Below are positions 1 through 58,710 of a stretch of DNA of 64,000 nucleotides, piece after piece (the first letter of the stretch is position 1; every line of letters begins with the position of its first letter). This DNA is from Eukaryota sp. TZLM1-RC (lineage: Eukaryota; Protista; Metamonada: BaSk clade), in contig JAUPSS010000004.1 in assembly GCA_040285825.1 (NCBI GenBank), forward strand, positions 5,981,784-6,045,783, written 5' to 3'. The position numbers and the translations under genes are program-made. Below the pieces are notes generated by a model that worked only from the letters and a program-made list of their open reading frames with translations, did no database searches and was not told the DNA's origin.

Positions 1-822
1 AAAAGCAATCACGATGGCAAGGCGGTCAACCAACAGTTAGAGTTGGTTAATTTACAATCGCAAGTTTCTGATCACCAATCAACAATGTCTAAACTGGAAA
101 CTGAAATTTCAAAGTTAAGATTCCGAAATTCCCAGTTAATGTCTGAAATTAATGAAAAGGATTTGGAATTAACTAATCAAGTGGCTGAAAATAATATTTT
201 AGAAACTGAATTTCAACAAATTCAAAAGGAAGCGCAAAATTACAAAAGTCAGTTGAATTCAGCAGAAACACGCGTCACTGAGCTGTTCTCTGAGCTGACA
301 AGTGTCAAGTCTCAGCTGACAAATATTTGTAGTTCAAAGGACGCGGAATGGATTGAAAAACTTGAAAATTATAAAGATGAGTGGAAGAAGAGCTCAGAAA
401 AGGATCAGTTATTACTGAAGAGACAATTAGAATCACGTTTCAAAAGGGAAACTGATGAATTGAGGGGTAGAAATGAATATTTAGCGGAATTACTTAATGA
501 TACTGAAGCAAAGTGCAAAAAGTTAGAAGTTTCACAGAAGGAACATCTACAGTCGATAGCGACTTTACAGTCTGATAAACGTGACATGCAAAAAACAGTG
601 GATTCTTTGAAGATGGAAAATTTGGAATTAAGATCAGCAAGTCAGCCCAGTAATTCAGTCAATTTTGAATTAGAAATTGAACAATTAGAGAAGACTTTGG
701 AGCGTTTATTAGTAACAATTCGGAAAAAAGATGATGAAATAAGTCAACTAAGAAGAACAATAAAGGCTGAGTGTTCAGAACGAATGGCTTTAAAACAGAA
801 GTTGGCTTCAATCAAAAAATGA
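1..822 (+). CDS. Coiled-coil protein, 5'-partial (C-terminus resembles LEKR1-type coiled coils)
   Basis: Frame is open from base 1 (KSNHDGKAVNQQ...) to TGA at 820-822. Heptad-rich E/K/L/Q composition. The ending EISQLRRTIKAECSERMAL recalls the LEKR1 motif (from memory). The N-terminus is visible in the inverted duplicate at 11962-12520. Confidence 0.75.
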   Translation, partial: KSNHDGKAVNQQLELVNLQSQVSDHQSTMSKLETEISKLRFRNSQLMSEINEKDLELTNQVAENNILETEFQQIQKEAQNYKSQLNSAETRVTELFSELTSVKSQLTNICSSKDAEWIEKLENYKDEWKKSSEKDQLLLKRQLESRFKRETDELRGRNEYLAELLNDTEAKCKKLEVSQKEHLQSIATLQSDKRDMQKTVDSLKMENLELRSASQPSNSVNFELEIEQLEKTLERLLVTIRKKDDEISQLRRTIKAECSERMALKQKLASIKK

Positions 823-1722: not shown

Positions 1723-3733
1723 ATGAACGACAACCTTCTTTACCTTAAAAGACCACATACATCCTGTCCATTTGAACCAGACCCTCACTCCTTGAACAAT
1801 GTTTATCCTGGGGACCCCGAGTCAAAACTTCCTGAATCAAGAGATACTCTTTTCAAAAACTTTCTCGAAAGTGTCCAGCGTTATCCAAACCGAGAAGCCT
1901 TTGGTAGAAGGGTTGAAAACGATGGAAATGTTTCCTTCGACTATTTATCGTACACTCAAGCTCTGAAACAAGTAGAAAGTATCAGTGGCGGTTTCGCTTC
2001 ACTCAATGTCATACCCGGTGAGAGGGTTGCCATTCTTGGTCCAAGCAGAGTAGAGTGGATGTTGACAGATCTTGCAATTCAGAGAAGCGGTCTCATCACA
2101 GTTGGAATTTATGCTGATATTCGAGAAGCAGACCAACTCCATATTCTCCGGGATTCAGGATCATCCATTCTCTTGTTCAGTCTATGTTGCCAGTCTTCTG
2201 CCGAGTATCTCCTAAAACATGCATCTTCTCAACTTAAAGCAGTGGTCTGTATGGATGATTGCGAACCATTACCAACACAATTGCCTTTCTTTACTTTTTC
2301 CAAGTTTTGTTCTCTCAATAACTCTCCTCCAGCCCCTTGTAACTGTTCCTCCAACGATGTTGCCACTCTTGTCTATAGCTCTGGTACTTCTGGTCCAAGG
2401 TATGGTATTGGTCACTCCATGCTCATTACAGCAAAGGTGCCATGCTTACTCACCGCAATGTCCTTTCCGGTGCTCTCTCCTACAACGAGGTAATGCCACC
2501 TTCTCCTGATCCCAACCATCAAGAAGTTATATTATCATACCTACCTTTAAGTCATATCTTTGAACGTACCTTTTCTACAGCAGCGTTAATCCATGCTTGT
2601 AAAATAGGTTATTTTTCCGGCAAGACCAGTACATTGGTAGGGGACATTCAAGCTGTGAAACCGACTGTTTTCATTGCGGTTCCAAGGGTTTTATCAAAGA
2701 TTTATAATGGAGTTATTACAAAAGTTAATAATTCGTTCTTTTTAAAAAGATTTTTGTTTAATAAGTTTTATGAATGTAAAAGAACTTCTGATTTGCGTGG
2801 TCGAAATTCTCGTTTTTTGACTAAATTTTTCAAGAATTCGGTGGCTCAAAAATTTGGTGGTCGTCTACGTGTCATTTATTTTGGTTCAGCCAAATGTGAT
2901 CCTGAAATTGTAGAATTCCTTCAAACAGTCCTTTCTATCCCAGTTAACCAAGGGTGGGGGATGTCTGAAACCTCAGCAGCAGGTACCGTTGTTGATTTAA
3001 ATGATAAGGACTACTATACGGCTGGTACTATTAAGGGAAGGGACACTCAAATAAGACTGCGGTCAATTCCTGAACTAGGTTATTCTGTAACTGATGATCC
3101 ACCACGTGGAGAAATAGAAATAAGAGGTTCTGTTGTGTGTAAAGGATATTGGGGTTGAATAATGAGTCAAAGTTCACATCTGATGGGTTTCTTAAAACTG
3201 GCGATGTTGGTTGTTTCCTCGAATCAAACCATAACCCCAACCCTAATTCCAACCCCAACCCCAACTCTAAGGTTTGGACAAAGCTTGTGGTGTTGGAACG
3301 ATTGTCCAGTAATTTCAAGTCTTCTTTTGGGGAAATGGTTTCTGCTGATTTGGTTGAATCCATATATTGCAAGTCCGATTACGTTCATGATGTGGTCGTT
3401 ACGGCTGGTGGTGCGAGACTGATTGCTGTGGTAGTTTTAGAAGAAGAGTTTCGTAGTTCTAATGACTTTGGAGCCGTTGCTCAGGAAATTCTCAATGACT
3501 TTAGTCGTTTGGCTGATCAACATAATCTTCGACCTTATGAAAGGGTTGGTGCCGTACATTTGGATGTGAACGAATGGACAATTGACAATAATTTACTCAG
3601 TGCATCAATGAAAAAAAAGAGATTGATGATTTTGCAGCATTATAGCGAGTCTATTGAGCGATTGAGTAATCAGATGAAGTCAAAATTAAATAGAATTGAA
3701 GGTTGTTTCAGTGGTTGTCAGAATGTGGAATAG
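1723..3733 (+). CDS. ACSL: Long-chain fatty acyl-CoA synthetase (AMP-binding), with one 32-nt intron and one apparent frameshift
   Basis: Splicing out 2400-2431 restores the AMP-binding motif YSSGTSGPSKGAMLTHRN. Also SYLPLSHIFE, GWGMSET, PRGEIEIRG, DGFLKTGDVG. One G is missing in the G4 run at 3151-3154 (GYWG* should read GYWGLNNE). Confidence 0.9.
2400..2431 (+). other. Spliceosomal mini-intron, 32 nt (GTATGG...GCTCATTACAG)
   Basis: GT-AG. Removal joins two ORFs and restores the P-loop-like GPSKG motif. Confidence 0.9.
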
Positions 3734-7779: not shown

Positions 7780-9900
7780 CATTGATCTCTTTTTAATTTT
7801 TAGTTTTGCTGTAAAAAGCTTCAACAAAAATTGTCAAAGATTTTTGAAAGCTTGGATTTTGATGTTAGACTTGGCTTAGTCAAGAAAAAGCATCCCGCTT
7901 TTGCAAATCTTTTACAAGATATGTGTGATAGTACTTCTTCGGCCTTAGTAACAACAATTCCACAAGTTTATGGTACTCTCTTATCCGATTCTGCTTGGAC
8001 TCTGAATATGAGACTTTGCTCCTTTATTTGGATTGATAATTTGTCTCATAATTCAAATTGTAATTGTTCTCGAAAAATTACAGAAATACAATCTTTGAGT
8101 TTTCCGAAAGATTTGTAGATTGGGAAGATTTATTGATACCAACGCAAAGTTCCACTGTTTTTGCATTAAATGAAGAAATTTCAAAAATTGATGTAGAAAA
8201 ATGGGGTTGATGTTTTCCCCAATCATTCAATGGCAATATTCCAGAAACAATGTTTTAAATTTGAAGTACACTCTTCGAACATTACAGAAACGATTTACTG
8301 GAATGTATGAAAAAGATCTTTATAATAATATATGCAGCTCGGCTGTTTTAAATCAAGATCTTCACTCATTGTTATTGGAAAAGGGTGTTTGTGAAAACAA
8401 GTCGTCAGATTCTTCACTTTTTGTAACCATTGTACCACGAAGATTTAAATTGTGTGCCACTAATGAAGCATTTGTAACAAAAATGAGATTATATTTGAAC
8501 ATCCCCATTAATCAATTTTTATCAAAAGAAAAATGTATTTGTTCGAATTCCCCTCAACTCACTTTGCGCCATGCTCTAAATTGCTCTAAATTGATAACTT
8601 ATCGTTCTTCATTACATGATGCTGTTAGAGACACTGTTTTCAATATGGCACAAACTGCAAGGATATCGTGTATCAAATTGCCCCTGCTGAAGGAAGCACT
8701 TTCTCTGAATAATTTTGGTTCTGATGATAGAGGTGATGTATACTGTGATTGGATTGATAATTCTGAAGCTATTGTTGACTTTGTCTCATGTAATGTTGCA
8801 AATGATACTTTGGTTCACAGAAGAAAACTTAATCCTGTGGCTGCTCTGGATTTTAAAGCAAAAGAGAAACATAGAAAATATGATAAAGATATTGAAGAGG
8901 CTAATGTCGATAGAAATACACAGCTGGCTTTTATTGCTTTCCCATTTTCGATAAATGGAGGATTATCAGTTGAAGCAGAAACTTTTTTGGATGACTTCCA
9001 AAAAATGGTGCAAGAAAAAACAATGAAAAGATTTGATATTTTTTTATGGCGTTCACGGATTCAATTTGCCATTCTTAATAGATTACCTCGGTTTTTCAAT
9101 CGAATTAGAGAAGCTTTAGCTAGACAGTAAGCAGATCAAGATTTTGTAGAGGAAATCTTGGTTCAATGATGGTCGTGTCATTAGTTATGAGTTAATTTAA
9201 TTAAGTTAGCAAATTCAATAAATACCTTAAGGGTCAAAACAAATTACAATTACTCATTTGTTGAATTTTAAACATTGATTTACTTTTATAACCAAGGTTC
9301 ATGATGCTGTAAGAGACCAATTGTATTGTATGTGTAAATCTCATAGAATTGATTCTTTTTTGGAACCTCTGTTGTCAAATCTGTTTGATACTGATTTTTA
9401 TAAGAATAATTGAGGCGACGTCATATTACCTGGATTACATAGAACTTTCATTTTGGAGGAAGTAATGTCTGTTGATCCTTGTAATGTAATGTCTCAAATG
9501 AAAGGCTTGCTGATTCTGACCACTTTCAAGTGCTGAAAATTTCAAAATCAAACAAATATAATGAACCTCTGTCCAAATTGTCCAACCAACGGCATGCAAA
9601 ATACAATTTGTATCCATTTGTATTTTCTCTAATAGGTTCACTTGCTCCCACGGACATATGGTTTTTGGCAGAATTTGAAATGATTGTAAAGAGATAAACT
9701 TACAGAAATTTCAACAGATTGTTTTGGCAAAATAGAATTGTGTTTTCTATTTTTAAGGGGATGTTGAAGATGGTCTTTGATGTTTCGCTTTCTCCAGAAT
9801 CTCACTATGAGAAAGTTGCATCTAGTTGTTTTGTTTTGGGAGAGATGGTTTATTTAGATGTTGATTTATAAGTTTCCTAAGTATATATTTTTAAAGAATA
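7780..9900 (+). mobile_element. CRE-like family B fragment interrupted by a family A copy (8083-9223)
   Basis: 7780-8082 and 9241-9900 are collinear with the family B copy at 21627-22838. 8083-9223 matches family A, with the zinc finger CICSN…HALNC and the RLE motifs HDAVRD, RGD, K..KY, FPFSING. AAATTACA is duplicated at 8075-8082 / 9241-9248. Confidence 0.85.
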
Positions 9901-10199
9901 GTTGTTCAACAGCGCTATTTTCACAATGGACTTTCTTATATAATCTTTCAATATTTACAAATGTTTATTCATTGGCAGAGAGACTGCTGAATTTGCAAGT
10001 GATGATCTAAATCTACCTTTCATTATGCTAGAAATCAGATTTGTACCATATGCAAAAACCATTGCATTTATTAGAACTTTTCGGTATTTGATTAACAAAA
10101 GAAACAAAATTTGTAAAGCTACTTATGCGAAATTGGACTGGAAATGAATTTTTGACTTATATGATTGGAACCTTCTACAATGTACACAAAGTTCACTAG

Positions 10200-10310
10200 T
10201 GATTTTCCATCATTGATTACTAATGATGTTTGTGAAAAAATAAGCAGTTGATTTTGCTAAAAAAGAGAAGAAACACCCTGGTGTTTTGCTGAGAAGAGCA
10301 AAATGAAAAA
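10200..10310 (+). mobile_element. Short degenerate RLE fragment, family E
   Basis: Similar to the VDFAKKDETPLCFAEKSK coding sequence in 44212-45020. Confidence 0.5.
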
Positions 10311-10762
10311 CAAAACAAGGAACATTGGAACCTTTTGTTTTTCATCTAGAACGTGTGGAGCACATAAAAAACCAGCTGGTCCCATTTGCAATTTCTTGTG
10401 TTTTCAATTAAAAAGATGGTTTGGATAAATTTGTGAACCACATTTGGAAAGCAATTATAGAACAGGCCAAATGAAACATCACTGACGCATTTCACAAGAA
10501 AATGTATCATCTGAAAATAGACCATATTTTTTGGGGATTGAGTAATTGAACCGACAGAGCAACTGTTTTGAGCAGCTAATGAAAATTTTGCAGAGGCGGG
10601 ATTATCATTTTTGGCTGAGCCAAGACGAACATTGAAAATCCCAACCATCATTGATCATCTAAAACTTAAGGCTCCAATGTCTATCCACAAGGCAATGAAA
10701 CTGATCAGAACTGTGCTTCATATACGTCTTGTTGTGTTAGTTCTTTGATTTATCAAACAAGG

Positions 10763-11404
10763 AATAAAAAATCATGAAATACACAACTAGAGCTCCACAT
10801 TCTCAAAAACTGCTTCCCCTACATCAAAACAATTAATTACTGAAGATTCAGAAAATTTCCCAACAGAAGATAGTGAATCAAAAATGAATTTCACTATTCT
10901 TTTAAAAATAGAAAATACATTCCTGTTTTGCCAGTAAACACGATTCAAAATTCTTTCAGTTCGTTCCTTTACAACTACATCAAAGTCCTCGACGAAAGCC
11001 ATAACAGCCTTACTGTGACCTAAAAATCCAAGCAAGAAAAAAGGAAAAATCAAAAGGACATAAATTATATTGGGCATGAGAATTTTCACTGACAAAGGAA
11101 ATAAGTTTCGAGTATTTAGCAATTTTGTATTTTTCACCAGCAAGAAGAGGAGTGTTCACATCTAAATTTTTGAAATGTTCGCTAGAAGAGTTACAAGGGT
11201 CTATGGACCAGGCACCTAATATAATAAAACTATCATTTAAGCCAGGAACAACCAAATCACCTCTTGTCAGACCCATAGAGGCTCTGTTGTAGCGCGTACT
11301 ATCAATATTGGGGTCATTGAGAATTAATTTTGATAGCAAAGGCTCTAAAAAGGAATCTACTCGATATGACCTACACATTGCATAATTTTGGTCCCTGACA
11401 TTAA
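10763..11404 (-). mobile_element. CRE-like family C, 3' fragment
   Basis: SFLEPLL…TRGDLVVPG…SIDPCN…KIAKY…FENVEL*. Homologous to 56585-57945. Frameshifted. Confidence 0.85.
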
Positions 11405-11611
11405 AATGTAATTATTAGGTCCTTAACCTTAATCATTGCGTAATAAAATGTTTACAGTTTAAAAGATGAGTAAACATATGCGGTTTACCACATTTACATG
11501 TTGAATGATTAGGTAAATTGTTTGGCCATAGAAAACAAAAAAAAGAGTCTTCTGAATGGAGTTGAATTGGTCAGTCTTCATTCTCACACTGTTTTTTTAC
11601 AGAAGCTTTAA

Positions 11612-11961
11612 GTGCCAAAACCAAGCCCCCCACAAGCTAAAATAAAACGATTTAAAGAACGAATAAAACCCATAGAAGAGTTTAATCGTCAACAATGGTC
11701 AAGACAACGTGAGCGTGCTAGAAGAAGATTGGAAGAAGAAAGAAGGGTGAAAACAGAGAGAAAAGCGGTAGAAGAGCTTAAACAAGAGAAAGCAAAGTTG
11801 GCCACGTATCATATCAAATCTCAGGTAGAAAGAGACCGGCAACTGATTGCTATTGATGACGTTTCGGATCACGTGATGAGTCCAGAGGAATTAGCTCAAA
11901 ATAGAGCACGTCGGCAGTTATTAAGAGACATTAAGGATGAAACTTCAAAGCTGAGGGCAGT
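11612..11961 (+). pseudogene. Fragment of a charged coiled-coil gene, truncated at an inversion junction
   Basis: Coding-like R/E/K-rich frame with an in-frame TAA just upstream (11609-11611). It runs into the antisense of the duplicated coiled-coil gene at 11962. Confidence 0.5.
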
Positions 11962-12520
11962 TCTTAACTTTGAAATTTCAGTTTCCAGTTTAGACATTGT
12001 TGATTGGTGATCAGAAACTTGCGATTGTAAATTAACCAACTCTAACTGCTGGTTGACCGCCTTGCCATCGTGATTGCTTTTCAGCTCAGTTATTAACCTT
12101 TCCTTTTCAATCAAATCATTTTCAAGTTCGGAAAGCTGCAGACTCTGAGATTGAGTAGCTTCATTTAATTTAGATACTTCACACTCAAGTTGCTGGTTTA
12201 GTGATTGAACACTGCTCATTTCTTGGTTAAGTTGTGATATGTGCGCATCATGAGAGTGTAGAGACGACAGAGCAAGGGAAAGAGAGGACTGTAGTTGAGA
12301 TTCAATTGAGGTAAGTTCTGCATTGATATCATGGCGAAGGTCATTGAGATCAGAACGAAGGGAGAACGCATTTGAAACCTTCTGGAGTGTGTCTGGAGCG
12401 AAAAATACATCACTTACTTGTGGAAGAGGAAGATTATGTGATTTGCAGTAATTTTTGATAAGTAGTGATTGTGTGTTTAAGCTGAATCACCTTGGTTTGT
12501 AAAGAATTGAGTTTAGACAT
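11962..12520 (-). pseudogene. Inverted partial duplicate (5' part) of the coiled-coil gene at 1-822
   Basis: 11962-12081 is the reverse complement of window 1-120 at 119/120 identity (one synonymous CAA/CAG change). ATG at 12520 (MSKLNSLQTK), one +1 A at about 12441, truncated after EISKLR. Confidence 0.85.
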
Positions 12521-12775
12521 CGCCTAATAACACAAAACGTCAAACAGTGGTAACCTGTTGAGATTGATGGAGGACGTGGATAAAATGAACTGAGATGCTG
12601 AACTACTCAGTTGGAGAATTCTTACAAAGTAAATGGAAAGTGTGGGAAAGTGTGGGAATAGTGAAAACCTCCCAAAACCAAGTTGAGGGTTAAAAACCTC
12701 CCAGAATAGGCAACCAGAAGTCGAAAATGGGTGACAAGTGTAAAATTTGATAGATGAGCTCTTTATTCTCACTAC

Positions 12776-14737
12776 ATGTCAGACACCCCCTCTGTATCAC
12801 GTGTATTCACTCGGTCTTGTGCACTTAACTCGCTGCTGACCCCTGCAGCGGTGCAACAAATTCGGACTGACCTTCCTGTGGTCACCGAGATTTGTCATGA
12901 AGCTTCTTTATTACTTCAATCTTTTCTTCTAAATTTTCCGTTGGCATCAAGAGCTTTAGTGGAACAGGATGTATGGTATCTGTTTATGACCGTCATCACC
13001 ACTGGTTCTTTTCCAAAGCCTTCCACATCTAAAGGCCAACGCCAATTACTCCATATCTTTTTACAATGGATTTCTTCCTGAATGCCCACAAGACAGGTCT
13101 CTTGTTTCTGTGTGGGAAAATTCTTTAGTGCCTTACAGAAATTCATTCAATCTTTTCCTCAATGATTGGCTGCAGTCCCAGAACTGTAATTTTATCAATA
13201 GAAAAGGGCTTTCTTCTTATCTTGCCTGTCGTGCTCGTCAATTGGCCTCCAACGTTAAGACATGTTTACCCAAAATTTGTCAATCCTGGACAAAAAACTT
13301 TATTCGTGCTCATTGTAGAGCCCTGAATAAAACAAATGTCTTTGCAAATAATATTCTTTCACTTTTGCCAGATGAACTACTAGCCCAACCCGAGGAAGTA
13401 GTAGTTGATTCTGTTCTTGAATACCTCATCAATTTCAATTTGAATAATTCAAGAGAAAGATTTTTTTTATTGAATGCATGTAGGTTTATCTTGAATCTCT
13501 TTCAAAGATTTCCTACCACTGCCTCCCTACTGTCCTCACATGATAAAATCACTTTTTCATCAAAGGAAATTAGTGAGCTTTTTCTCTTCAATCTTAAAAT
13601 TTCACAATACTTACTCACTTTCTTTTCTCATATGCATTGCTGGAAGAAATTTAGAATAATACCTTTAGCTTCTCATAAAGGTTCTAAATTTATTGAGGTA
13701 CCTTCACAAATTTTCCACTCTGTGAAAAAAATTTCCAATTATTGAAGGATCATCTTCCAAAACAAAGTTTATCAAAAATACATGTCTGAAACGAGTATTC
13801 AAACAATGTCCTTACCAAAAATTCAATATCAACAGAAAAAGTTTGAAAAATAGATTTAACAAAATTTTATTGAAAACTAATGGTAATGAACTGCTTTTGA
13901 CCTTTGAAGGTAAAAATAATGACTCAGAAAAACACAGATGAGCTGGATGAACCACCGAAAAAGAAAAGAAGATCAAAAAGTGAAATGAAAAGTGACCCTA
14001 ATGCCAACAAAACCAGAGAAACACAGTTGAAGGGTACTAAAAAAATGCCCCGTCGAAGACGTAGACATCCAGTCGAAATTTTTACCTGAAAGGCCCCTTA
14101 TCGGCGTTGATCTTGGCCAATCAAGATTATGTGGTTACTTCTTAAATGATAATCAATGTGGAGTTATCCCTTGTCCAACTGGCAGAAGATACATGACAAA
14201 AAAATTCACCCAGTAAACACTCTCCCAACCAATATTCCGTTCAAAATTTCAACCAATATTTGAACCATTGGAATTTGGTCAGGAGGAAAGTGTATTTGGA
14301 AAGTAATCGCCAGAAATGGAAAATAATTAAATTTGATAACCGCAGACGAAAAGAGAGACGGTTCAGAGAGAGTCTCAACAAATTTCAAAGTCTGGCTGGA
14401 CATCCTGAAAAACTCTATCTTGCTGTGGGTTCTGCTAATTTCCCTTCTCATTGCCGAAAAGTCAATCGATATGGATCAGCAAGGGCTTTCAGAAAATGGT
14501 TGTGTTATCAAAAGGACGTGAAGCACTTGTCAACCAGTGAATTTAATACAAGCAAAATGTCAAGTTGTTGCATGGCCGAGAATATTCAAGCAGGCTCATG
14601 GCAGATGCGTATTTGTACTGAGTGTCAAATAGTATATGACAGAGATATTTCCGCTGCAAAAAAATATTCAAATTAAGAAGAAAGCGGAATTGTGGCCGGA
14701 AAGATACATTTGCCCAGATGCTCTGCTGAGGAGATGA
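12776..14737 (+). CDS. Fanzor (eukaryotic TnpB-family RNA-guided RuvC nuclease), 651 aa after correcting six +1 homopolymer shifts
   Basis: WED-like LKTNGNELLLTF; RuvC-I LIGVDLGQ (D at 14109-14111); LAVGSANF with G at the canonical E position; relocated RuvC-II SEFNTSK (E at 14539-14541); zinc finger SCC…CTEC; RuvC-III YDRDISAAKNI (D at 14644-14646); ends PDALLRR* at 14737. No nonsense substitutions are needed in the reconstruction. Confidence 0.9.
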
Positions 14738-14744
14738 ATAGGGA

Positions 14745-14880
14745 ACGTGAGCATACAGAAACAAAAACTTTTGAGACCGATCTACAAATACCTTAGTAGC
14801 ATTTGATAGATCCACTTAGATACATCAAGTCGCGAGGCTTTGTTCTGTGAATGCAGTAGGTGTATTTAAGTGAGGTAGCC
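14745..14880 (+). ncRNA. Candidate Fanzor omegaRNA scaffold
   Basis: Hairpin 14779-14789/14801-14812. A 14-bp stem 14813-14826/14859-14872 with two G:U pairs, enclosing a GCGA-tetraloop hairpin at 14827-14840. Pseudoknot pairings 14790-14793/14873-14876 and 14751-14760/14843-14854. It lies immediately 3' of the Fanzor stop codon. Confidence 0.7.
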
Positions 14881-14990
14881 CATTGATGAAGATCATGATT
14901 GTCTTTGTCAAATGATGCTACATGTCTCTTACAGCCTGTGAGTAGACATTGAGAAAGTTGAAAACAGGAGTGAATTTCACAGGGGAATGC

Positions 14991-17180
14991 ATGATAAGTG
15001 AAATTCACAGTACAGAAGCTTCCACTAATACCCTTTCTCTGCCTATCCAGGAAACCAGTGAATCTTTCCCTCTTCAACAACCATATAGACGAGAATCATC
15101 CATGCTTCATGATGCTACTTCCCCTCCTCATGCAAGCTTGTCTCCTTCAGCGATGTTACAGACCCCACATTGCTCGTTTTCCGATCTTTCGGATGCAAAT
15201 TATGGAGTCAAAAGCATTTCCAGTAACTCTGGCCACTCACTTCTCCTCACCTATTCTGGTGAGGTTTATAGTTGGGGGTTTAATGATTCAGGTCAAGTTC
15301 TATATGATGGACCCAGGTCAATCAAATCACCAATCAAATTACCCTTGACCAATATCATTTCTGTTTCAACTGGTCATTATCACTCACTTTCCCTCTCTTC
15401 TGAAGGTAAGTTATATGGTTGGGGATGTAATGATGATAACCAGATTGATATATCCAGTATTTCCTCACTACCAGTTACCCATATCGACATTCCTTATAAC
15501 ATCAAGGAAGTTTGTGGTGGTGAAGATGCTTCGTTTGCTTTGACCCAAGAAGGTCAAGTTGTCAAATGGGGAGTTGGTTTATCATTTGAATTAATAGAAG
15601 ATTTGAGTGATATTGATCATGTTTATGCATATGGTGATTCATTTGTAGCTATTGATGGTAATGGTGATTTCTTCTGTAAAATTGGAAACCATTTCATCAT
15701 TAAGATACCAGTTACCCAGTCCATAACTCCAAAACTGCCATTAAAAGGTTCTATTTCACTGATTGTAGATAGTGTTCAAACGTTTTTACCCCACGAAGAT
15801 ATTGATTTTGATGAGATTTTCTCTCTGTTTGTGATTGATATTGATGGTAATTTTTGGATAGTCGGTAACAACGAAGTCACCAAAAATCCAGATTTATCAA
15901 ATATTTTCTCGATTAGTATTTTTGATGGTTTTTGCTCTGCTATTAATACTAATCGTAAAGTTTTGGTGTGGAGTGCTTTAAATAGAATAAGTGATGTTTA
16001 TGCAAATACACTTGAACCAAGATGCATTGAAGCTTTCACTAATATAGAAGGCATTTCAGTTGGCAATAACTATGTTTTTGCCTACAACAAAAACACTGTT
16101 TGGGCTTGGGGAAGGAACGATAGAGGTCAGTTAGGTACAGGTGATTTGATTGATCGACCACAGCCTGTCAAAGTATTTGGATCTGAAATACTTGGCAGTT
16201 TACACTATCCTAAACAGCCTTTGGATAGAATGTTTAGTGGTCTAGCCAAATTAATTTACTTTGAATATTTACAATATTTGAAGAATTTGTTTGGTAACCA
16301 TCCCTATACAAAAGCCAGGTTCCTAACCAAATGTTCAATTAGCAAGAAAGTGGCTAAATTTACCAAAACAGTAATCGATGGTTTTAAATTTTTAAAAGAT
16401 CCTCAAGATTTAGAATCAAATGACAATATTTGTGATTTAAAATTGCGATTATCTACTGATTTTCAAGGTCCCAAAGTAATTAATACTAGAATTAAAAAAC
16501 TTGATGTTTACTTTGATGAAGTTGATTATGATCCACAATTATTGTCGTTTTTCCCAAATGTTGAGGTTCTTAAGCTTCATTCAGTTTTCAGTTCTGGTAG
16601 ACAGATTTCGTTAAACTTGACACATTTGTCAAATCTTAATTGTCTTGAGATTGATGGCAACTTCGATATAGAACAATTACCCACATCACTAGTGAAGTTA
16701 GTACTTAACAACTATAACTTTAGGGTTACTGACTTAAGCTATCTTACGTCTTTAAAAGAGTTTTTGGTGGTTTATTTTTCCCAAAAAATTTCAACTTGTA
16801 TGTTAACAGGACAAATACCTTTACCTCAATCCATTGTTAAATTGGAAGTTTGGTTGGACGAACCTGTTAATATTGAAGTACAATTACCCAACTTGAAGGA
16901 ATTAGTAATTCATTACGATGTCCCTAGCAATATTACTGAACAAAACTTTCCTTCTTTGAAATTCATTCAGTTGATTAAACCTTATGAGAATATTTTGTCA
17001 CATTCCCCCCTATTTCCAACAAAACTTAGTAATCAAGGTTTAATTAAATTTGTCAAACTAATCAAGAATGAATATTTAGTCGAATTATCTTGTTTTCCAT
17101 GGTGGATTCAGTATCGAGCCCAAAGGTTCTTGATTGACATTTTCAGTGATCATGTAGATGAGAAAGTTGTAGATTCTTAG
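14991..17180 (+). CDS. RCC1-repeat protein with C-terminal LRR/FNIP-like repeats
   Basis: RCC1 motifs HSLLLTYSGEVYSWGFNDSGQ, GHYHSLSL…LYGWGCN and VWAWGRNDRGQLGTGD. C-terminal LPTSLVKLVL, LPQSIVKL and LPNLKEL repeats. Start codon uncertain (14991, 15102 or 15153). Confidence 0.8.
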   Translation: MISEIHSTEASTNTLSLPIQETSESFPLQQPYRRESSMLHDATSPPHASLSPSAMLQTPHCSFSDLSDANYGVKSISSNSGHSLLLTYSGEVYSWGFNDSGQVLYDGPRSIKSPIKLPLTNIISVSTGHYHSLSLSSEGKLYGWGCNDDNQIDISSISSLPVTHIDIPYNIKEVCGGEDASFALTQEGQVVKWGVGLSFELIEDLSDIDHVYAYGDSFVAIDGNGDFFCKIGNHFIIKIPVTQSITPKLPLKGSISLIVDSVQTFLPHEDIDFDEIFSLFVIDIDGNFWIVGNNEVTKNPDLSNIFSISIFDGFCSAINTNRKVLVWSALNRISDVYANTLEPRCIEAFTNIEGISVGNNYVFAYNKNTVWAWGRNDRGQLGTGDLIDRPQPVKVFGSEILGSLHYPKQPLDRMFSGLAKLIYFEYLQYLKNLFGNHPYTKARFLTKCSISKKVAKFTKTVIDGFKFLKDPQDLESNDNICDLKLRLSTDFQGPKVINTRIKKLDVYFDEVDYDPQLLSFFPNVEVLKLHSVFSSGRQISLNLTHLSNLNCLEIDGNFDIEQLPTSLVKLVLNNYNFRVTDLSYLTSLKEFLVVYFSQKISTCMLTGQIPLPQSIVKLEVWLDEPVNIEVQLPNLKELVIHYDVPSNITEQNFPSLKFIQLIKPYENILSHSPLFPTKLSNQGLIKFVKLIKNEYLVELSCFPWWIQYRAQRFLIDIFSDHVDEKVVDS

Positions 17181-17304
17181 GTATAATTGATAAATTATTT
17201 TGTTTTTATCTATATTTATTGTATACTTTAGGAGACAAATTAGACTATCTTGGATGATTAAATTGAAATTGTGAAACAGCGCTCAAAATTAGATTGTTTT
17301 CGCC

Positions 17305-21341: not shown

Positions 21342-21626
21342 TTGGGAAAATTGTTGAAATTGTTTTGTTTTCAATTGAATTCATTTGACTTCGACATTGA
21401 TTCCGATTGAAAAACCCTGATTCAATGTAGATGACTTTGAGGCATAATAATTCAATTGTTGTAAAAGAAACCACACAGAAAGCCCAGTGAATTGGCTTCT
21501 ATCTGTGCCTTTATTTGAAATCAAATTGGTGTATGTAGTCACGTCATTCTTTTTGAGTGAAGCGGATTTCCTCCGTCGTGAGCATGAGCTAATAACAAAA
21601 TAATATCAAAGTGTGGTTGATGAGAC

Positions 21627-22838
21627 TTTTTTTTTAAAAATTTAATTTTATTCTAAACCTATAAATCAACATCTAAAAAATCCATCTCTCCCAAAACAAA
21701 AACACTAGATGCAACTCTCTCATAGTGAGATCCAAGAGAAAGCAAAGCATCAAAAACCATCTTCAACATCCCCTTAAAAATAGAAAACACAATTCTATTT
21801 TGCCAAAACAATCTGTTGAAATTTCTGCCAGTTCTTCTCTTTACAATCATTTCAAAATCATCCAAAAAACGTAAAGCAGTTGGTGCAAGTGAACCAAAAA
21901 GGGAAAATACAAATGGATACATATTGTATTTTGCATGCTGTAGACTGGCCAATTTGGACAAAGGTTCATTGTATTTTTTGAATTTAAAATTTTCAGCATT
22001 TGAAAGGGGATCATGAATTTCAGAATTAACAAGCCTTTCATTTGAGGCATTACAAGGATCAACAGACATTACATCCAATAAAATGAAGCTTCCATCTAAT
22101 CCAGGTAATATGACATCACCTCTATTATTCTTATGAAAATCATTTTCAGCATGAAACAGATTTGACAACAGAGGTTCCAAGAAGGATTCAATTCTATGAG
22201 ATTTACACATATAATATAACTGGTCTCTTACAGCATCATGAACCTTGCTTCTAAAAGTAATAAAATGTTTACAATTTAACAAATGAGTAGTTGTAATTTC
22301 TCGAGAACATTTACAAATTAAATTATGAGGTAAATTATCAGGCCAGATAAAGGAACGAAATCTCATATTCAGAGTCCAAGCAGAATCGGATAAGAGAGTA
22401 CCATAAACTTGTGGAATTGTTGTTACTAAGGCAGAAGAAGTACTGTCACACATATCTTGTAAAAGATTTGCAAAAGCGGGATTCTTTTTTTTGGCCAAGC
22501 CAAGTCTAACATCAAAATCCAAGCTTTCAAAAATCTTTGACAATTTTTGTTGAAGCTTTTTACAGCAAAACTGTAAATTAAATAGAGATCGGTTTGGAAT
22601 TTCTTGAATTGATTGAGGAAAACATTTGGTCCAAATTTGTGGCGGTAATTTTTCAAGTTCACAAGATAACCCATACAAATAGGGACTACAATTGGGGACT
22701 AACAGATGAGAATCATCAGGAAATCTACGAGAAAATTCATAAATAAAATTTTTGCCACCACCCAAGAATGCCGATTGACACAAAATTGAAGATTTAGTAA
22801 AACCAATACCACCCAAATTTGCTGAAGAAAATAAATTT
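21627..22838 (-). mobile_element. CRE-like non-LTR retrotransposon family B, 5'-truncated, ORF open
   Basis: LGGIGF thumb motif, CKC…HLLNC zinc finger, HDAVRD, EP, RGDV, DVMSVDP, K..KY, PFVFSLFG. Stop at 21659, followed by a short A-rich tail. Confidence 0.9.
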
Positions 22839-23171
22839 GATGAGACAGTAGATAATTGTTCAAAATTTGGAAGAAGTAACAACTAATTAATTTTTTAGAT
22901 GACTTAGGAAAACTTCATTACGCAGTTTAATGATAAGCGACTCTTGATTCAAGTGAATGAAGAAATTCTCCCGTCATTCACTTGATGATATTTTTAATAG
23001 GAAAAAATATTAGGTAATGTTTATTGTGCAGTTTAACAATGTGTCTGTTCCTGGAATAAACTAATCAATACTATTGGGATTTGTCTTGATTGATTAGCTA
23101 CATTGTTCACCAAAAAAGTGAAGTTTAAACAATGCATTGTAATTAGTTCAACTTTTGAGGCAAAAATGTAT

Positions 23172-27323: not shown

Positions 27324-27384
27324 TGCTTGATGTCAAGTAGCTTAAATGATAACAGATTATACAATTCGGGTTATTACATTTCTG

Positions 27385-29620
27385 TATTCATTGAATTTGT
27401 ACACTTAATTAAATTAACTCATAACTAATGGGACGACTATCATTAAACCAAGATTTCCTCTACAAAATCTTGATCTGCTTGCTGTCTAGCTAAAGCTTCT
27501 CTTATTCGATTGAAAAATCGAGGTAATCTATTAATAATGGCAAATTGAATCCGTGAACGCCATAAAAAAATATCAAATCTTCTCATTGTTTTTTCTTGCA
27601 CCATTTTTTGGAAGTCATTCAAAAAAGTTTCTGCTTCATCTGAGAATCTTTTATTTATCGAAAATGGAAAAGCAATAAAAACCAGCTGTGTATTTCTATC
27701 AGCATTAGCCTCTTCAATATCTTTTTCATATTTTCTATGTTTCTCTTTTGCTTTAAAATCCAGAGCAGCCACAGGATTAAGTTTTCTTCTGTGAACCAAA
27801 GTATCATTTGCAATATTACATGAGACAAAGTCAACAATAGCTTCAGAATTATCAATCCAATCACAGTATACATCACCTCTATCATTAGAACCAAAATTAT
27901 TCATAGAAAGTGTTTCCTTCAGCAGGGGCTCTTTGATACACGATATCCTTGCAGTTTGTGCCATATTGAAAACAGTGTCTCTAACAGCATCATGTAATGA
28001 AGAACGATAAGTTATCAATTTAGAGCAATTTAGAGCATGGCGCAAAGTGAGTTGAGGGGAATTCGAACAAATACATTTTTCTTTTGATAAAAATTGATTA
28101 ATGGGGATGTTCAAATATAATCTCATTTTTGTTACAAATGCTTCATTAGTGGCACACAATTTAAATCTTCGTGGTACAATGGTTACAAAAAGTGAAGAAT
28201 CTGACGACTTGTTTTCACAAACACCCTTTTCCGATAACAATGAGTGAAGATCTTGATTTAAAACAGACAAGCTGCATATATTATTATAAAGATCTTTTTC
28301 ATACATTCCAGTCAATCGTTTCTGTAATGTTCGAAGAGTGTACTTCAAATTTAAAACATTCTTTTCTGGAATATTGCCATTGAATGATGGGGGAAAACAT
28401 CGACCCCATTATTCTTCATCAATCTTTGAAATTTCTTCATTAAATGCAAAAACAGTGGAAATTTGCGTTGTCATCAATAAATCTTCCCAATCTGCAAATC
28501 TTTCGGAAAACTCAAAGATTGCATTTCTGCATCCACCAACAAATGCACACGAGGTAAGAATAGAAGTCTTCGTCCACCCTAAACCACCATAATGTGGACT
28601 AAGGTAAGCATGATCTGGAATTTGAAACATTTTACATCCCAGTAATTGTGACAGAACTTTTGCACGTAATTCATTAAACTTCTGAGCCAAAGGCCTAGTG
28701 ACAAGAGGATTTGTGGATCGAAATATATGATTGAAGTTGGAACTAAAACACAGTCTTATAATGGTAAATTTGATGTGTTTTTGAATATCTAAATTCATCA
28801 TTCGGTCAATTTTGTCGGAAATTGAGTTCAACTTTTCAAACAATTTTTTGGTAATTTCATCATTATTTCCTAAAAACGAACCCAAATGACGAATAGCATG
28901 AATAGAATATAAATTGGCTTGAATTTCAATACCATCAACTATTGTGGAAACTGGAGAATTCGATAACAAAACACATTTAAGTAAGTCGGAGACCAATTTT
29001 GGTTAATAATTCTTTAAAACTTACAGTTGCTTGTTTCACAATATTTAAATCACCAATAAGAACAACATCATCCATATATGCAATTATTTTTAGCGAAGGA
29101 AACATCTGTTGAATTTGCAATAAAATAGGATGAATGGCCAAACAAAACAAAAGAGGTCCTAACGGATCTCCTTGCTTTACTCCACTTGATGAACTCAAAA
29201 TGCAATTACCAAAATGTATATAAGAATATGTGCAATATGTTGATTGAAAATACGGTATTAATTCCGGCATATATTGCATTAGAGCACCATGGATACTGCG
29301 ACGACTTAGTGAATTAAAATCATTACTAAAATCCAATGACATACAAACATTGGATTCATTTTGGCGAAATAAATCATCAGTAGCAAATATCGCTGAACAG
29401 ACTCCATCTGTGGTATTAATACCATATTGAAAGGGCAATAAAATTTTTTTTGCTTTCTCATTGAACCTGCTTAAGCAACACGCAGAAAAAATATTGTGTA
29501 AGCTCTCAGAGACTGCAATAGGACGAATATCCATTTTTGAATTTTTGACAACTGCAGACAAACGAGAACTTCTTTTTTTTAGCAAAATCCTAAAATTTTT
29601 GATGATTAATTTCCTTCAAT
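27385..29620 (-). mobile_element. CRE-like non-LTR retrotransposon family A, longest copy, with reverse transcriptase
   Basis: RT motifs IRPIAV, QYG, LDFSNDFNS, GVKQGDPLGPLLF, AYMDD, GLRL; thumb YGGLG; zinc finger and RLE. One frameshift (about 28980) and one nonsense change (28409-28411). Confidence 0.92.
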
Positions 29621-45029: not shown

Positions 45030-46345
45030 TTTATTTATTAAACAACTTATAAATCAACATCCAAATAATAACATCTCTCCCAACACAAAACAATTAGATG
45101 CAACTCTTTTTTAGTGAGATCCACGGGAACGCAAAGCATCAGAAACCCAATATGTTGAAATTGCTGTAAGTTCTTTCTTTTCAATCATAATAAAATCTGC
45201 CAAAAGGAGTATAGACGAGGGAGCAAGTGAACCAAATAGAGAAAATACAAATGGATACAAATTGTATTTTGCATGCTGTTGGCTGGACAACTTGAACAAA
45301 GGTTCATTGTATTTTTTGATTTGGAGATTTTCAGCTTTTGAAAGAGGATCATGAATTATAGAACTAGCAAGCCTTTCGTTTGAGGCACTACAAGGATCAA
45401 CAGACATTAAATCCAATAAAATGAACGTTCTATCCAATCCGGGTAATATGACATCACCTCTATTGTTCTTATGAAAATCATTTTCAGCATCAAACCGATT
45501 TGACAACAGAGGTTCCAAGAAGGATTCAATTCTATGGTACTTGCACTTACAATACAATTGCGCTCTTACAGCATCGTGAATCTTGCTTCTAGGAGTTATA
45601 AGATGTTTACAATTTAACAAATGAGAAATTGTAATTTTTAGAGAACATTTACAAATTAAATTGTGAGGTAAATGATCAGGTCAGATAAAGGAGCGAAGTC
45701 TCATATTCAAAGTCCAGTCAGAATCAGATAAGAAAGTACCATAACCTTGAGGAATTGTTGTAACTAAAGCAGAAGATGTACTACACATATCTTGTAAAAG
45801 CTTTGCAAAAGCGGGATTCTTTTTCTTGGCCAAGCCCAGTCTAATATCAGAATTTAAGCTTTCAAAAATGTTTGACAATTTTTGTTGAAGCTTTTGACAG
45901 CAAAAATGCAAATAAAAAGAGATCGGTTTGGAATTTCTTGAATTGATTGGGGAAAACCTTTGGTCCAGATTTGTGGTGGCGATCTAACGAGTTCACATGT
46001 TAACTCATTCAAATATGGACTGCAACTGGGAACTAAAAAATGAGAATCTTCAGGAAAATCTACGAGAAAATTCAAAATAAAATTCTTGCCTCCACCCAAA
46101 AATGTTGACTGACACAAAATAGCAGATTTGGTGAATCCAATACCACCCAATTTTGCTGAAGAAAATAAGTGATTTTTCAACATTCCTGGTTCTACATCCA
46201 ATAAATCAGCCAAAAATTCTGTTCTCAATGAATTAAAGGAACGGCAAAAAACTAATGCTATGGAAGGAGCACAAGATCTCAAAATGTGGGTTATTCTCCC
46301 AGTGTAGCAAATTTTAAGCATGAAAAATTCAAATCCTTTTCTTGA
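45030..46345 (-). mobile_element. CRE-like family B, degenerate
   Basis: Collinear with 21627-22838 and extends further 5' (ITHILRS). Several frameshifts. Confidence 0.88.
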
Positions 46346-46980
46346 TTCACTTCTCATAAACTTTTTCATTTGGGAAATATCGTGAAATTCCATGTCATTA
46401 GTCCAGTTGTTGGTGTTGGAATTCAACATTGAAATAGAATTTCAGCATTCCGACTAAAATTCTTGACTTAATGAAAATGCTTGGGGTTTTGTATAAGAGG
46501 TACCGTGTTTTGAAAAACTTTGGGACAAAAGGGTAAAATTTCCAAAAAATTTACAAATACAATATTATTTTGCAATTTAAGAAGTGGAAAATCTGGGTTC
46601 CAAAAGGAGAAAGTTAAAATTTCAATGTATAATTGGGAATTCGAGTAGAATTGTAGTTTTTAGAATACCATTATTCAAGTACAAAAAACCTCAACCAATT
46701 TCAATTATTTCAGGACTTAAATCGGAGTACAATATCAGAATTAATCTTATGAAATAATGGCATCATCGACTTTAAAGTATGCATTAAATAAAATTTCTCA
46801 ATTTTGGAAGAGTGGAACCAGGCCTAACAAGAATTATCTTGTTCTATGGTTCTTTTGGGTCAATTTGTTTTAAGGTGCAAGGTATCCAAACAATAACAAT
46901 AGTTGTGTCAAAGCAAAATTTATGTTTTTAAACTATTTACTGGAGAATTTTGCTGAATAATTCAATGTCACAATTTGAAT

Positions 46981-55594: not shown

Positions 55595-56267
55595 TTGTTT
55601 TATTCAGATTTTTTGGTTTTTTGAGTTTTCACCGTTGTTATTTGTAAAAATAAATTGTAATTTAATCATCTTTGAATGTTTCTTCTTTTTCTTGGTATAC
55701 TGATGATAATTTAACTTCTCAAAGTCCCCACTTCTGGTATTGTTGAATTGCCACAGTTGATTAACAATAACATTAAACTATCGGTTACTGTGATCTTGAA
55801 TGTTACTACCTTCAGTTTACCCAATTTATTCTTGCTTCAGACTTCAAAATAATCTCTTCACATATCAGGATGAACCCCTTCACAAAGATTGGGAAACCGT
55901 CGAGTGGTAAGAGGTTTTCTTAATCGATTTAATTATTTTCTCAAAAGCTCAATAGTATTGATAATTATGTGCTGATTTCTGGTATTCAGGGATGTCTGGT
56001 GTCCATCAACTGTTAGAACGTTGGTTTTCCTCTTCATAATTATTAGTAATCTAAATTTTCTTATTTTCAACTTTATATTTTGAGGTGATCAGTTGGCCCA
56101 TTGATAAGTTGCCCAAACGAATCAACTCGATGAGTCAAATCATTTGAATGTTTAGGGAAAAGTTATGACTGGGGTAAATAGAAGGTTTATTATGTTTAAT
56201 AAAAGAAAGAACAGGAAATGAATTGAGTTTTAATTTCTGTTACAATAGAATTGTTTTTTGTATTTTT

Positions 56268-57945
56268 AAAGCCATTCCAGAAATGATTAATTCTTGATGA
56301 CCCCAATATTCATAGTACGCGCTGCAACAGAGCTTCTTTGGGTCTGACAAGAGGTGATTTGGTTGTTCCCGGCTTAAGTAATAGTTTTACTATTTTAGAT
56401 ACAATGTCCATAGACCCTTGTTATTCTTCTAACAAACATTTACTAAATACAAATGTCAATATTCGTTTTTTTGCTGGCCAAAAATGCAAAATTGCCAAAT
56501 GTGCAAAACGTATTTCTTGTTAATGCCAATTTTTTTTAACATCAAATTTTTTTATTTTAAAAATTTGTCATTCTGGAAAATTCACTCATATTTTAAGGTC
56601 AACTCCCCTTCGGTATCTCTCAATTTTTGCAGATCTTTTAACAAACTTCGAGTCAAATTTTTTTCTTTTTTATTAGAAGTAAATGAATCTTTAATTCGAA
56701 GTCATGTATTTTGTTCAGCAGATTTGGGTGGCATTGGATTCACCAAATCTTCGATTCTGTGTAAAGCAGCATTTTTGGGAGGTGGTAAAAATTTTGTTTT
56801 TGAATTTTTCCAAAGGTTCCCTTTTGATGTTCATCTGATCAATGGTGAATCAAATTTTTATTTGAATCAACTTCAAATCGAATTAGATAATTTGCCTAGT
56901 GATATCTGGATTCAGTGTTTTCCTCAAAATGTTCAAGAAATTCCCACCCGATCATTTCCAAAATTACGTTTTTGCTTGAAAAAGCTTCAGCACCATCTGG
57001 TTAAATTATATGAAGGCTTGGATTATGAAGTAAGACTTGGCTTGGCCAAAACTAAAAATCCCGCTTTCGGTAATTTTTTAAAGGATATTCGTGATAGTTC
57101 AGCTGCTGCTTTAGTAACTCAAGTTCCCTCTGTTTATGGACTTTTGTTAAAAGACAATGAATGGCTTCTAAACATGCGTTTTCGTTGTTTTCTGTGGCCA
57201 AACAATTTGCCCAATCATTTAACTTGTAAATGTGGTAAACCTCTTTTGTTTACTCATCTTTTGAACTGTAAACATTTCATTACGTTTAGAAGCAAAGTGC
57301 ATAACAACGTCAGGGACCAAATTTATGTAATGTGCAAATCATATCGAGTAGATTCCTTTTTAGAACCGCTGTTATCAAAATTAATTCTTGATGATCCCAA
57401 TATTGATAGTACGCGTTACAACAGAGCTTCTATGGGTCTGACTAGAGGTGATCTAGTTGTTCCTGGTTTAAATGGTAGTTTTACTATTTTGGACGCCATG
57501 TCTATTGACCCTTGTAATTCCTCTAACGAACATTTCATTAACTCGGATGTAAATAATCCTCTTCTTGCAGGCGAAAAATATAAAATTGCTAAATATGCGA
57601 AACCCATTTCCTCGGTTAATGAAAATTCTCATGCCCAATAGAATTTATGTCCCTTTGTTTTTCCTTGCTGGGATCTTTAGGTAAGGCTGCTATGACTTTC
57701 CTCGAAAATTTTAATGTAGTTGTAAGGGAAAGAACTGGAAGAATTTTAAATCGTCTTTACTGGCATAAAAGGATTGTATTTTCTATTTTTAAGAAAATGG
57801 TGAAATTAATTTCTGATTCACTCTCTTCTTTTGGGAAACTTTCTGAATCTTTAGTCATTAATTGTTTCGATGTAGGGGAGGCAGATTTCGAGGATGTGGA
57901 GTTTTAATTGTGTATTTCATATTTGTTGTTGGATAAAAATAAATA
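56268..57945 (+). mobile_element. CRE-like family C: short fragment (56268-56525) followed by a longer 5'-truncated copy (56585-57945)
   Basis: LGGIGF, CKCG…HLLNC, RGDLVVPG, SIDPCN, KIAKY, …FEDVEF*. Nonsense TAG at 57639-57641. Confidence 0.88.
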
Positions 57946-57946
57946 T

Positions 57947-58710
57947 CTAAAATTGATTAATGGGGATGTTCAAATATAATCTCATTTTTGTTACAAATGC
58001 TTCATCAGTGGCACACAATCCAAATCTTCGTGGTACAATAGTTACAAAAAGTGAAGAATCTGACGACTTAATATCACAAACACCCTTTTCCAATAACAAT
58101 GAGTGAAGATCTTGATTTAAAACAGCCAAGCTGCATATATTATTATAAAGATCATTTTCATACATTCCAGTCAATCGTTTCTGTAATGTTCGAAGAGTGT
58201 ACTTCAAATTTTAAACATTTTTTCTGGAATATTGCCATTGAATGATTGGGGAAAACTTCGACCCCATTTTTCTCCATCAATTCTTGAAATTTCTTCATTT
58301 AATGCAAAAACAGTGGAACTTTGCGTTGTCATCAATAAATCTTCCCAATCTGCAAATCCTTCGGAAAACTCAAAGATTGCATTTCTGCATCCACCAACAA
58401 AAAGCACACGAGGTAAGAATAGAAGCCTTCGTCCACACTAAACCGCCATAATGTGGACTAAGGTAAGCATGATCTGGAATTTGAAACATTTTACATCCCA
58501 GTAATTGAGACAGAACTTTTGCATGTAACTCATTAAACTTCTGAGCCAAAGATCTAGTGACGAGAGGACTTGTAGATCGAAATATATGATTAAAATTGGA
58601 ACTTAAACACAGTCTTATAATGGTTAATTTGATGTATTTTTTTATATCTAAATTCATCATTCGGTCAATTTTGTCGGAAATTGAGTTCAACTTTTCAAAC
58701 AATTTTTTTG
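57947..58710 (-). mobile_element. CRE-like family A internal fragment
   Basis: Near-identical to 28090-28850. Cut off where the family C 3' end abuts. Confidence 0.88.

Follow-up and report, generated by a model that had tools for sequence, protein, structure and literature searches.

Results

A gene in seven reading segments

Positions 12776-14737 of the window, by which we mean the whole 64,000-nucleotide stretch analysed here, hold a plus-strand gene laid out as seven stop-free segments that are chained by six +1 steps, with a run of A or T in every overlap window. The span is 1962 nt, and removal of six bases leaves 651 codons and a stop, with no intron in the read-through. The minimum number of +1 steps needed to cross it is six, compared with 27-62 in 300 shuffles of the same DNA, which confirms the claim of an earlier note, made from the letters alone, that the segments join into a 651-aa protein with no internal stop. 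The motifs quoted in that note (GVDLG, AVGSA, SEFNTSK, CC...CxxC and DRDISAAKNI) are all present (Table 1; motif numbering follows the read-through with the six surplus bases removed), and annotation did miss the gene, as the note anticipated: in the deposited record the locus has no call other than P9112_008633, a hypothetical protein of 301 aa. The zinc-finger cysteines are C596/C597 and, in the CxxC at 612-615, C612/C615, the first pair standing in S-S-C-C and not in CxxC. To judge by their sequence, the basic stretches PPKKKRR and PRRRRR may have an NLS-like role.

Skoliomonas litria is a soda-lake flagellate. The assembly deposited as Eukaryota sp. TZLM1-RC (GCA_040285825.1) is that of S. 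litria (PMC11603281), and window positions 9276-17245 are identical to its 6.9-Mb contig JAUPSS010000004.1. Neighbouring genes, judged from their translations, are midasin-, dynamin- and WDR35-like, as befits a eukaryotic genome. This identity and these neighbours support the protist host proposed earlier, and bacterial contamination was rejected.

Table 1. Features of the locus, in window positions.
Feature	Position	Strand	Basis
Additional DNA within the inserted unit; no source found	11609-11961		comparison
5' copy of 11-bp target duplication, directly after a T run	11598-11608	+	sequence
Captured 5' part of coiled-coil host gene, co-duplicated with the element; extra base in T5 12452-12456	11962-12637	-	copy comparison
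Left-end region common to all copies; no terminal inverted repeat with right end	12638-12775	+	copy comparison
Fanzor1-type gene, 651 codons in seven reading segments	12776-14737	+	frame chaining, shuffles, profile matches to SpuFz1 and GtFz1
Step 1: T5 (most paralogs T4; L005 T3)	13058-13062	+	paralog alignment
Step 2: A7 (A6 in six paralogs; A7 in L005 and L010)	13725-13731	+	paralog alignment
TNG aligned to Fanzor1 WED TDG motif	13876-13884	+	alignment to SpuFz1 TDG; motif from PMC10711439
Step 3: A5 (most paralogs A4; L005 A5)	13928-13932	+	paralog alignment
Two basic NLS-like stretches (PPKKKRR, PRRRRR) before RuvC-I	13952-14065	+	sequence
Step 4: T5 (T4 in 8/8 other copies)	14079-14083	+	paralog alignment; paralog proteins P0001 and P0037 read through
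RuvC-I GVDLG, residues 442-446 (D444); DLG where Fanzors usually have DPG	14103-14117	+	sequence
Step 5: A7; paralogs have a short A run, then CC	14198-14204	+	paralog alignment
Canonical RuvC-II position a glycine (G550), AVGSA 548-552	14422-14436	+	alignment; PMC10530073
Alternative glutamate E587 (SEFNTSK 586-592, E codon 14539) and zinc finger SSCC...CxxC	14536-14625	+	sequence
RuvC-III DRDISAA 620-626 (D622, codon 14644)	14638-14658	+	sequence
Step 6: A7 (six-base equivalent in paralogs; L005 A7)	14658-14664	+	paralog alignment
Conserved structured 3' noncoding region, candidate omegaRNA scaffold	14738-15010	+	fold z = -3.67; columns about 90% identical across five copies
Right-end hairpin, 11-bp arms 14970-14980 and 14998-15008; sharp right end 15010	14970-15010	+	copy comparison
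Right flank: 3' copy of target duplication (15011-15021) and candidate guide	15011-15031	+	guide role predicted from TnpB/Fanzor biology

Comparisons place the product in the Fanzor1 family

On the sequence comparisons made here, the product is a Fanzor1-type TnpB-like protein. The segments were searched separately, the read-through with X at each break being used only for alignment. Pfam model PF07282, the TnpB/Cas12f tail, is matched by the sixth segment at the cut-off (E 8e-6); the second segment alone has no Pfam or Atlas match. When profiles of relatives were compared with SpuFz1 and TnpB, as the earlier note had proposed for the protein itself, the top solved structures were SpuFz1 (PDB 8GKH, E 5.8e-12) and GtFz1 (9CER, E 1.1e-9), ahead of all TnpB/Cas12; the Fanzor1 matches span 220-300 positions, whereas those to TnpB/Cas12 are confined to the tail. 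In the profile alignment TNG falls on the Fanzor1 TDG. G550 coincides with the canonical RuvC-II position and E587 with the alternative glutamate, and both residues also align with relatives in the sister strain Skoliomonas sp. TZLM3-RCL. This is the rearranged RuvC-II as defined, along with the Fanzor1 motifs, in published work, in which Gly/Pro occupies the canonical site and the glutamate immediately precedes the zinc finger (PMC10711439, PMC10530073); together with the PF07282 tail it supports the TnpB-Fanzor identity claimed from the motifs, and the SpuFz1 match supports the narrower suggestion of Fanzor1.

The Fanzor C-terminal pattern D-x(125-275)-[TS][TS]-x-x-C4 zinc finger-x(5-50)-RD is found as D444, T590-S591, C596/C597, C612/C615 and R621-D622, with Ser at the first Cys position and an adjoining extra Cys. 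The RuvC-I DPG, which is near exclusive to Fanzors though not absolute, is replaced by DLG in the S. litria family; since the closest relatives, in TZLM3-RCL, keep DPG/DPN, DLG is a derived change. The length of 651 codons lies in the Fanzor1 class, whose proteins have about 600-800 aa, REC/WED insertions and a WED TDG motif, the last being aligned here with TNG. Fanzor2 and IS607 were considered and rejected, as proteins there have about 500 aa and no serine recombinase ORF occurs between the element ends or among the called neighbours.

SpuFz1 of Spizellomyces punctatus and GtFz1 of Guillardia theta are of similar size and have the WED 'IPL' and TDG-like motifs, the glycine at canonical RuvC-II, the alternative glutamate, the zinc finger and RD. 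They differ from the window copy in having DPG/DPN for its DLG and TDG for its TNG, and its zinc finger reads SSCC; moreover SPu-1 has terminal inverted repeats, which the Skoliomonas element lacks. The N-terminal half, described in the earlier note as very divergent, does barely score against the solved Fanzor1s (best i-Evalue 3.7), but it aligns over its full length with paralogs and TZLM3-RCL relatives. The IS200/IS605 TnpB of ISDra2 and Cas12f/Cas12m share the zinc-finger/RuvC-III tail (PF07282 at the cut-off), and for them too a guide is expected from the right flank. However, the match to these proteins covers only about 50-60 C-terminal residues, and the window copy lacks the canonical glutamate, is 240 residues longer and lies in a eukaryotic context.

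AlphaFold2 models of relatives had mean pLDDT values of 48 and 40 with shallow alignments, and Foldseek returned nothing below E 0.086; the structure prediction is poor because alignment depth is lacking. The Atlas clusters nearest to an RCL protein hold proteins of 620-710 aa, mostly from giant viruses and some with PF07282, which we treat as a lead only. An alignment-based protein search matched three RCL proteins and nothing else, no relatives were found in metagenome contigs and viral contigs, and in the literature we found no paper on metamonad Fanzors or naming both Fanzor and Metamonada.

Copies in the same genome and in TZLM3-RCL

Two of the segments, used as queries, matched dozens of S. 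litria fragments (65-99% identity) and also unbroken relatives in TZLM3-RCL. The hunt for other copies in the genome that the earlier note had recommended thus produced paralogs by the dozen, and the 'new lineage' that it envisaged stands as a divergent Skoliomonas subfamily but not as an isolated gene, given these paralogs and the unbroken relatives. In one natural paralog, L010, a single frame spans everything between the WED strand and the stop and includes all three acidic residues. The twin of the window copy, L005, is 99% identical to it over 3058 bp, with 20 substitutions and 11 gaps, all of the gaps at homopolymer runs; two of the 11 form a compensating pair that also occurs in L010 and is probably real. 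None of the eight other retrieved copies is unbroken in the assembly: several have stops, larger indels, inserted retrotransposons or a substitution of the RuvC-III aspartate. Among the matches found there is no full-length S. litria protein of the family.

Several of these copies have further features of their own. L009:1912-4466 has about 215 bp duplicated in tandem within the copy, and its RuvC-III D is changed to G; L007 has D-to-Y at the same residue. Pieces of non-LTR retrotransposons, each with a short target duplication, are inserted in two copies, at L004:3398-4761 and L008:4365-7081. The left flank common to the L007-L010 subfamily includes an ORF with an MJ1316 domain (L008:2814-3083 and L010:2810-3076). 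Window positions 1-435, where a coiled-coil gene stands at the window start, are 99.8% identical to L005:2372-2806 in the left flank of L005; it is therefore probable that the minus strand immediately ahead of the window start holds a third near-identical Fanzor copy.

The TZLM3-RCL proteins (RCL1_008468, RCL1_001093 and the 592-aa RCL1_004020 family) share 31% identity with the window copy over the whole length and 44-47% in the N-terminal strand and RuvC half; RCL1_008468 aligns with residues 11-650 of the X-filled read-through at 31%. The SxCC zinc finger is common to both sides. Unlike the window element, the nearest TZLM3-RCL family has an N-terminal XPG/FEN1-type nuclease domain: RCL1_008468 is a 1323-aa fusion, present in several copies, of an XPG_N/XPG_I nuclease domain followed by a full Fanzor1, with a 2A-like motif, DVEPNPG, at about residues 92-98 in which the next residue is M rather than P. 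At L003:1923-5980 the fusion is divided into two ORFs. RCL1_004020 and six more, 95-99% identical, are Fanzor1-type copies of 592 aa that are unbroken and keep D, E and D; these seven would be better assay material than the window copy.

The nature of the six steps

The positions of the steps were fixed by alignment to eight other copies, and six diverged copies are without the extra bases. The fourth overlap also contains an A7 run at 14039, but this run is the normal state in paralogs and was rejected as step 4; the step is the T5 at 14079. At 14198 the paralogs read AAAACC (or ANAWCC), from which the window copy differs by two C-to-A changes plus the extra base, so that its A7 is not the product of one slippage event. 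Three of the six surpluses and the CC-to-AA change are common to the window copy and L005.

Each of the six surpluses is one base in a run of A or T. The window copy carries six indels per 23 substitutions, compared with nine per 384 in five diverged copies (Poisson p = 2e-5, Fisher p = 2e-4). The read-through has no stop codon and its dN/dS against five paralogs is about 0.3. The co-duplicated fragment of a host gene is broken by an extra base of its own, at 12452-12456, whereas neighbouring single-copy genes (20.8 kb) run unbroken across more than 100 runs of five or more. The genome was assembled from R9.4 MinION reads with Albacore, ABruijn and Nanopolish, followed by short-read correction, and TZLM3-RCL was sequenced with a different kit and flow cell (10.1101/2023.05.03.539051); homopolymer indels are a documented residue in hybrid Nanopore assemblies (10.1101/381640). 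Because the window copy has near-identical twins, short reads would probably have been unable to correct such surpluses. L005 shows no substitution against it from 13149 to 14336, apart from a variant at 13964-13980, nor from 14336 to 14806, so that five of the six sites lie where short reads could scarcely separate the two copies. Most or all of the six extra bases are therefore probably consensus errors of the Nanopore assembly, in a copy of a recently inserted Fanzor1 element. Counting against this, deletions are commoner than insertions among Nanopore errors, and all eight other copies are broken as well. As the breaks look mostly like long-read assembly errors, the window copy may be intact, although that it is fully so, with every one of the six bases an error, we judge to be slightly short of an even prospect.

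A less probable but substantial alternative is that the copy is truly dead, at least one surplus (first of all that at 13725) being real and either inherited or arising by polymerase or reverse-transcriptase slippage during copying. No working gene would be needed in that case, because the element would still be moved in trans. The A7 at 13725 is found in three related copies, namely the window copy and, as its closest relatives there, L005 and L010; this and the three surpluses shared with L005 make inheritance possible, although L008 is nearly as close around 13725 and has no indel. Other copies are clearly decayed, and the variable-length target duplications and captured 5' pieces described below fit retrotransposon-driven copying, a possible source of slippage. 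Against real decay, the indel-to-substitution ratio of the window copy is about 11 times that of the other copies; the copy has no stop, and every indel in it falls in a run. After diverging from L005 it would have gained three run expansions for about one substitution in the gene, and diverged pairs of retrotransposons in the window carry 1-2 indels per 40-46 substitutions. Errors of assembly remain the preferred reading.

A reading in which the genome does carry the surplus bases, and the cell bypasses them through programmed +1 frameshifting or slippage during transcription, is very unlikely. The six steps do all have the same sign and fall on slippery runs, but the paralogs are in frame without the extra bases, the twin L005 carries a different set of expansions, and four single-copy genes cross 41 A5, 11 A6, 51 T5 and 12 T6 runs with no shift. 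Frameshift sites of the Euplotes type have a stop codon directly after the run, and no such stop follows the runs here. Short introns are more improbable still. The deposited gene model takes the first step in this way: it gives P9112_008633 301 aa across 970 nt, and so implies an intron of 64 nt. However, the paralogs differ by exactly one base per site and encode continuous homologous sequence, and some overlap windows are only 17 nt long.

The ends of the element

The two copies of the 11-bp duplication (Table 1) bracket an inserted unit of 3.4 kb. Its right end at 15010 is sharp in all copies whose right side was compared. The left side is ragged: of the coiled-coil gene, the window copy includes 676 bp and L005 about 990 bp, and in L007-L010 the captured flank, common to all four, is a different one. 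Target duplications were sought post hoc across seven loci; L010 has one of 15 bp with one mismatch, which does not follow a T run and ends where the captured flank begins, and none was found in the five other copies. Between the end regions there is no inverted match of 8 bp exact or of 10 bp with one mismatch, and no transposase was found within the element.

The 273 nt from the stop to the right end lie where an omegaRNA is expected by analogy with known systems, with its guide drawn from the flank. No two-sided covariation was seen in this region among five copies, and it has no Rfam match. In the window and the retrieved loci no second site matches the candidate guide with two or fewer mismatches, other than a two-mismatch 15-mer in the midasin gene that we take as chance.

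The downstream gene, which encodes RCC1 repeats (window 14991-17180), has its first in-frame ATG in the loop of the right-end hairpin and its next ATG 90 nt past the element end. In other copies an ATG lies 0, 3, 17 or 35 nt after the end.

Discussion

The locus is one young copy of a many-copy mobile Fanzor1 gene, a member of a known enzyme family and not a new kind of system. The window copy is best explained as a recently inserted copy of a transposase-less Fanzor1 element. By analogy with known Fanzor1 biology, the product of an intact copy would be a 651-aa nuclease, located in the nucleus and bound to an RNA whose transcription crosses the right end, with the scaffold extending up to 15010 and the guide taken from the right flank. 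The nuclease would then cut DNA matching the empty insertion site beside a short motif, and such cutting could help the element to persist while movement is supplied in trans. Less firmly, we infer that the element is moved by a one-ended process that would start at the right-end hairpin and stop at variable points on the left.

The closest parallel is provided by the Fanzor1 elements CRe-1/2/3 of Chlamydomonas reinhardtii, which have been described as one-ended, non-autonomous Helitron2 elements (PMC3627910). They too have no transposase, a fixed hairpin-bearing 3' end and a variable 5' end with captured extra DNA, and their target duplication is 7-19 bp after a T run, compared with 11 bp after a T run for the window copy. 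In contrast to them, the Skoliomonas element has no asymmetric terminal inverted repeats and its gene is intron-free. Of the features of Helitron2, the fixed 3' end with a subterminal hairpin, the variable 5' end and a variable-length duplication after a T-rich tetranucleotide are found, but the asymmetric terminal inverted repeats of 8-15 bp are absent, and since these repeats are defining we do not file the element under Helitron2. A rolling-circle, Helitron2-like mechanism nonetheless has about an even chance of underlying the one-ended movement. The abundant non-LTR retrotransposons offer a fair rival explanation, copying by their reverse transcriptase being a somewhat less probable mechanism of the movement, and capture during break repair seems unlikely.

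This work extends Fanzor1 to Metamonada, with a candidate nuclease that is divergent and intron-free and for which a candidate scaffold end and guide have been mapped. After CRe-1/2/3, it is the second case in which Fanzor1 elements are one-ended, have target duplications of variable length and carry captured DNA on the 5' side. In the S. litria assembly, uncorrected homopolymers may be all that makes the youngest repeat copies look dead. It is unlikely that every part of the fullest reading holds: an intact and active copy of a metamonad Fanzor1 element without terminal repeats, which would move from its hairpin right end, take along as much as 1 kb of the host DNA to its left and land just upstream of host genes, taking the start of a host gene as its guide, and whose own hairpin loop would give the RCC1-repeat gene its first in-frame ATG.

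Two further observations concern the rest of the window. An acyl-CoA-synthetase-like gene at 1723-3733 is found in three overlapping ORFs. Fragments of non-LTR retrotransposons from two families, 82-96% identical in pairs, lie at 8075-9250, 21600-22900, 27380-29600, 45100-46430 and 56260-58700.
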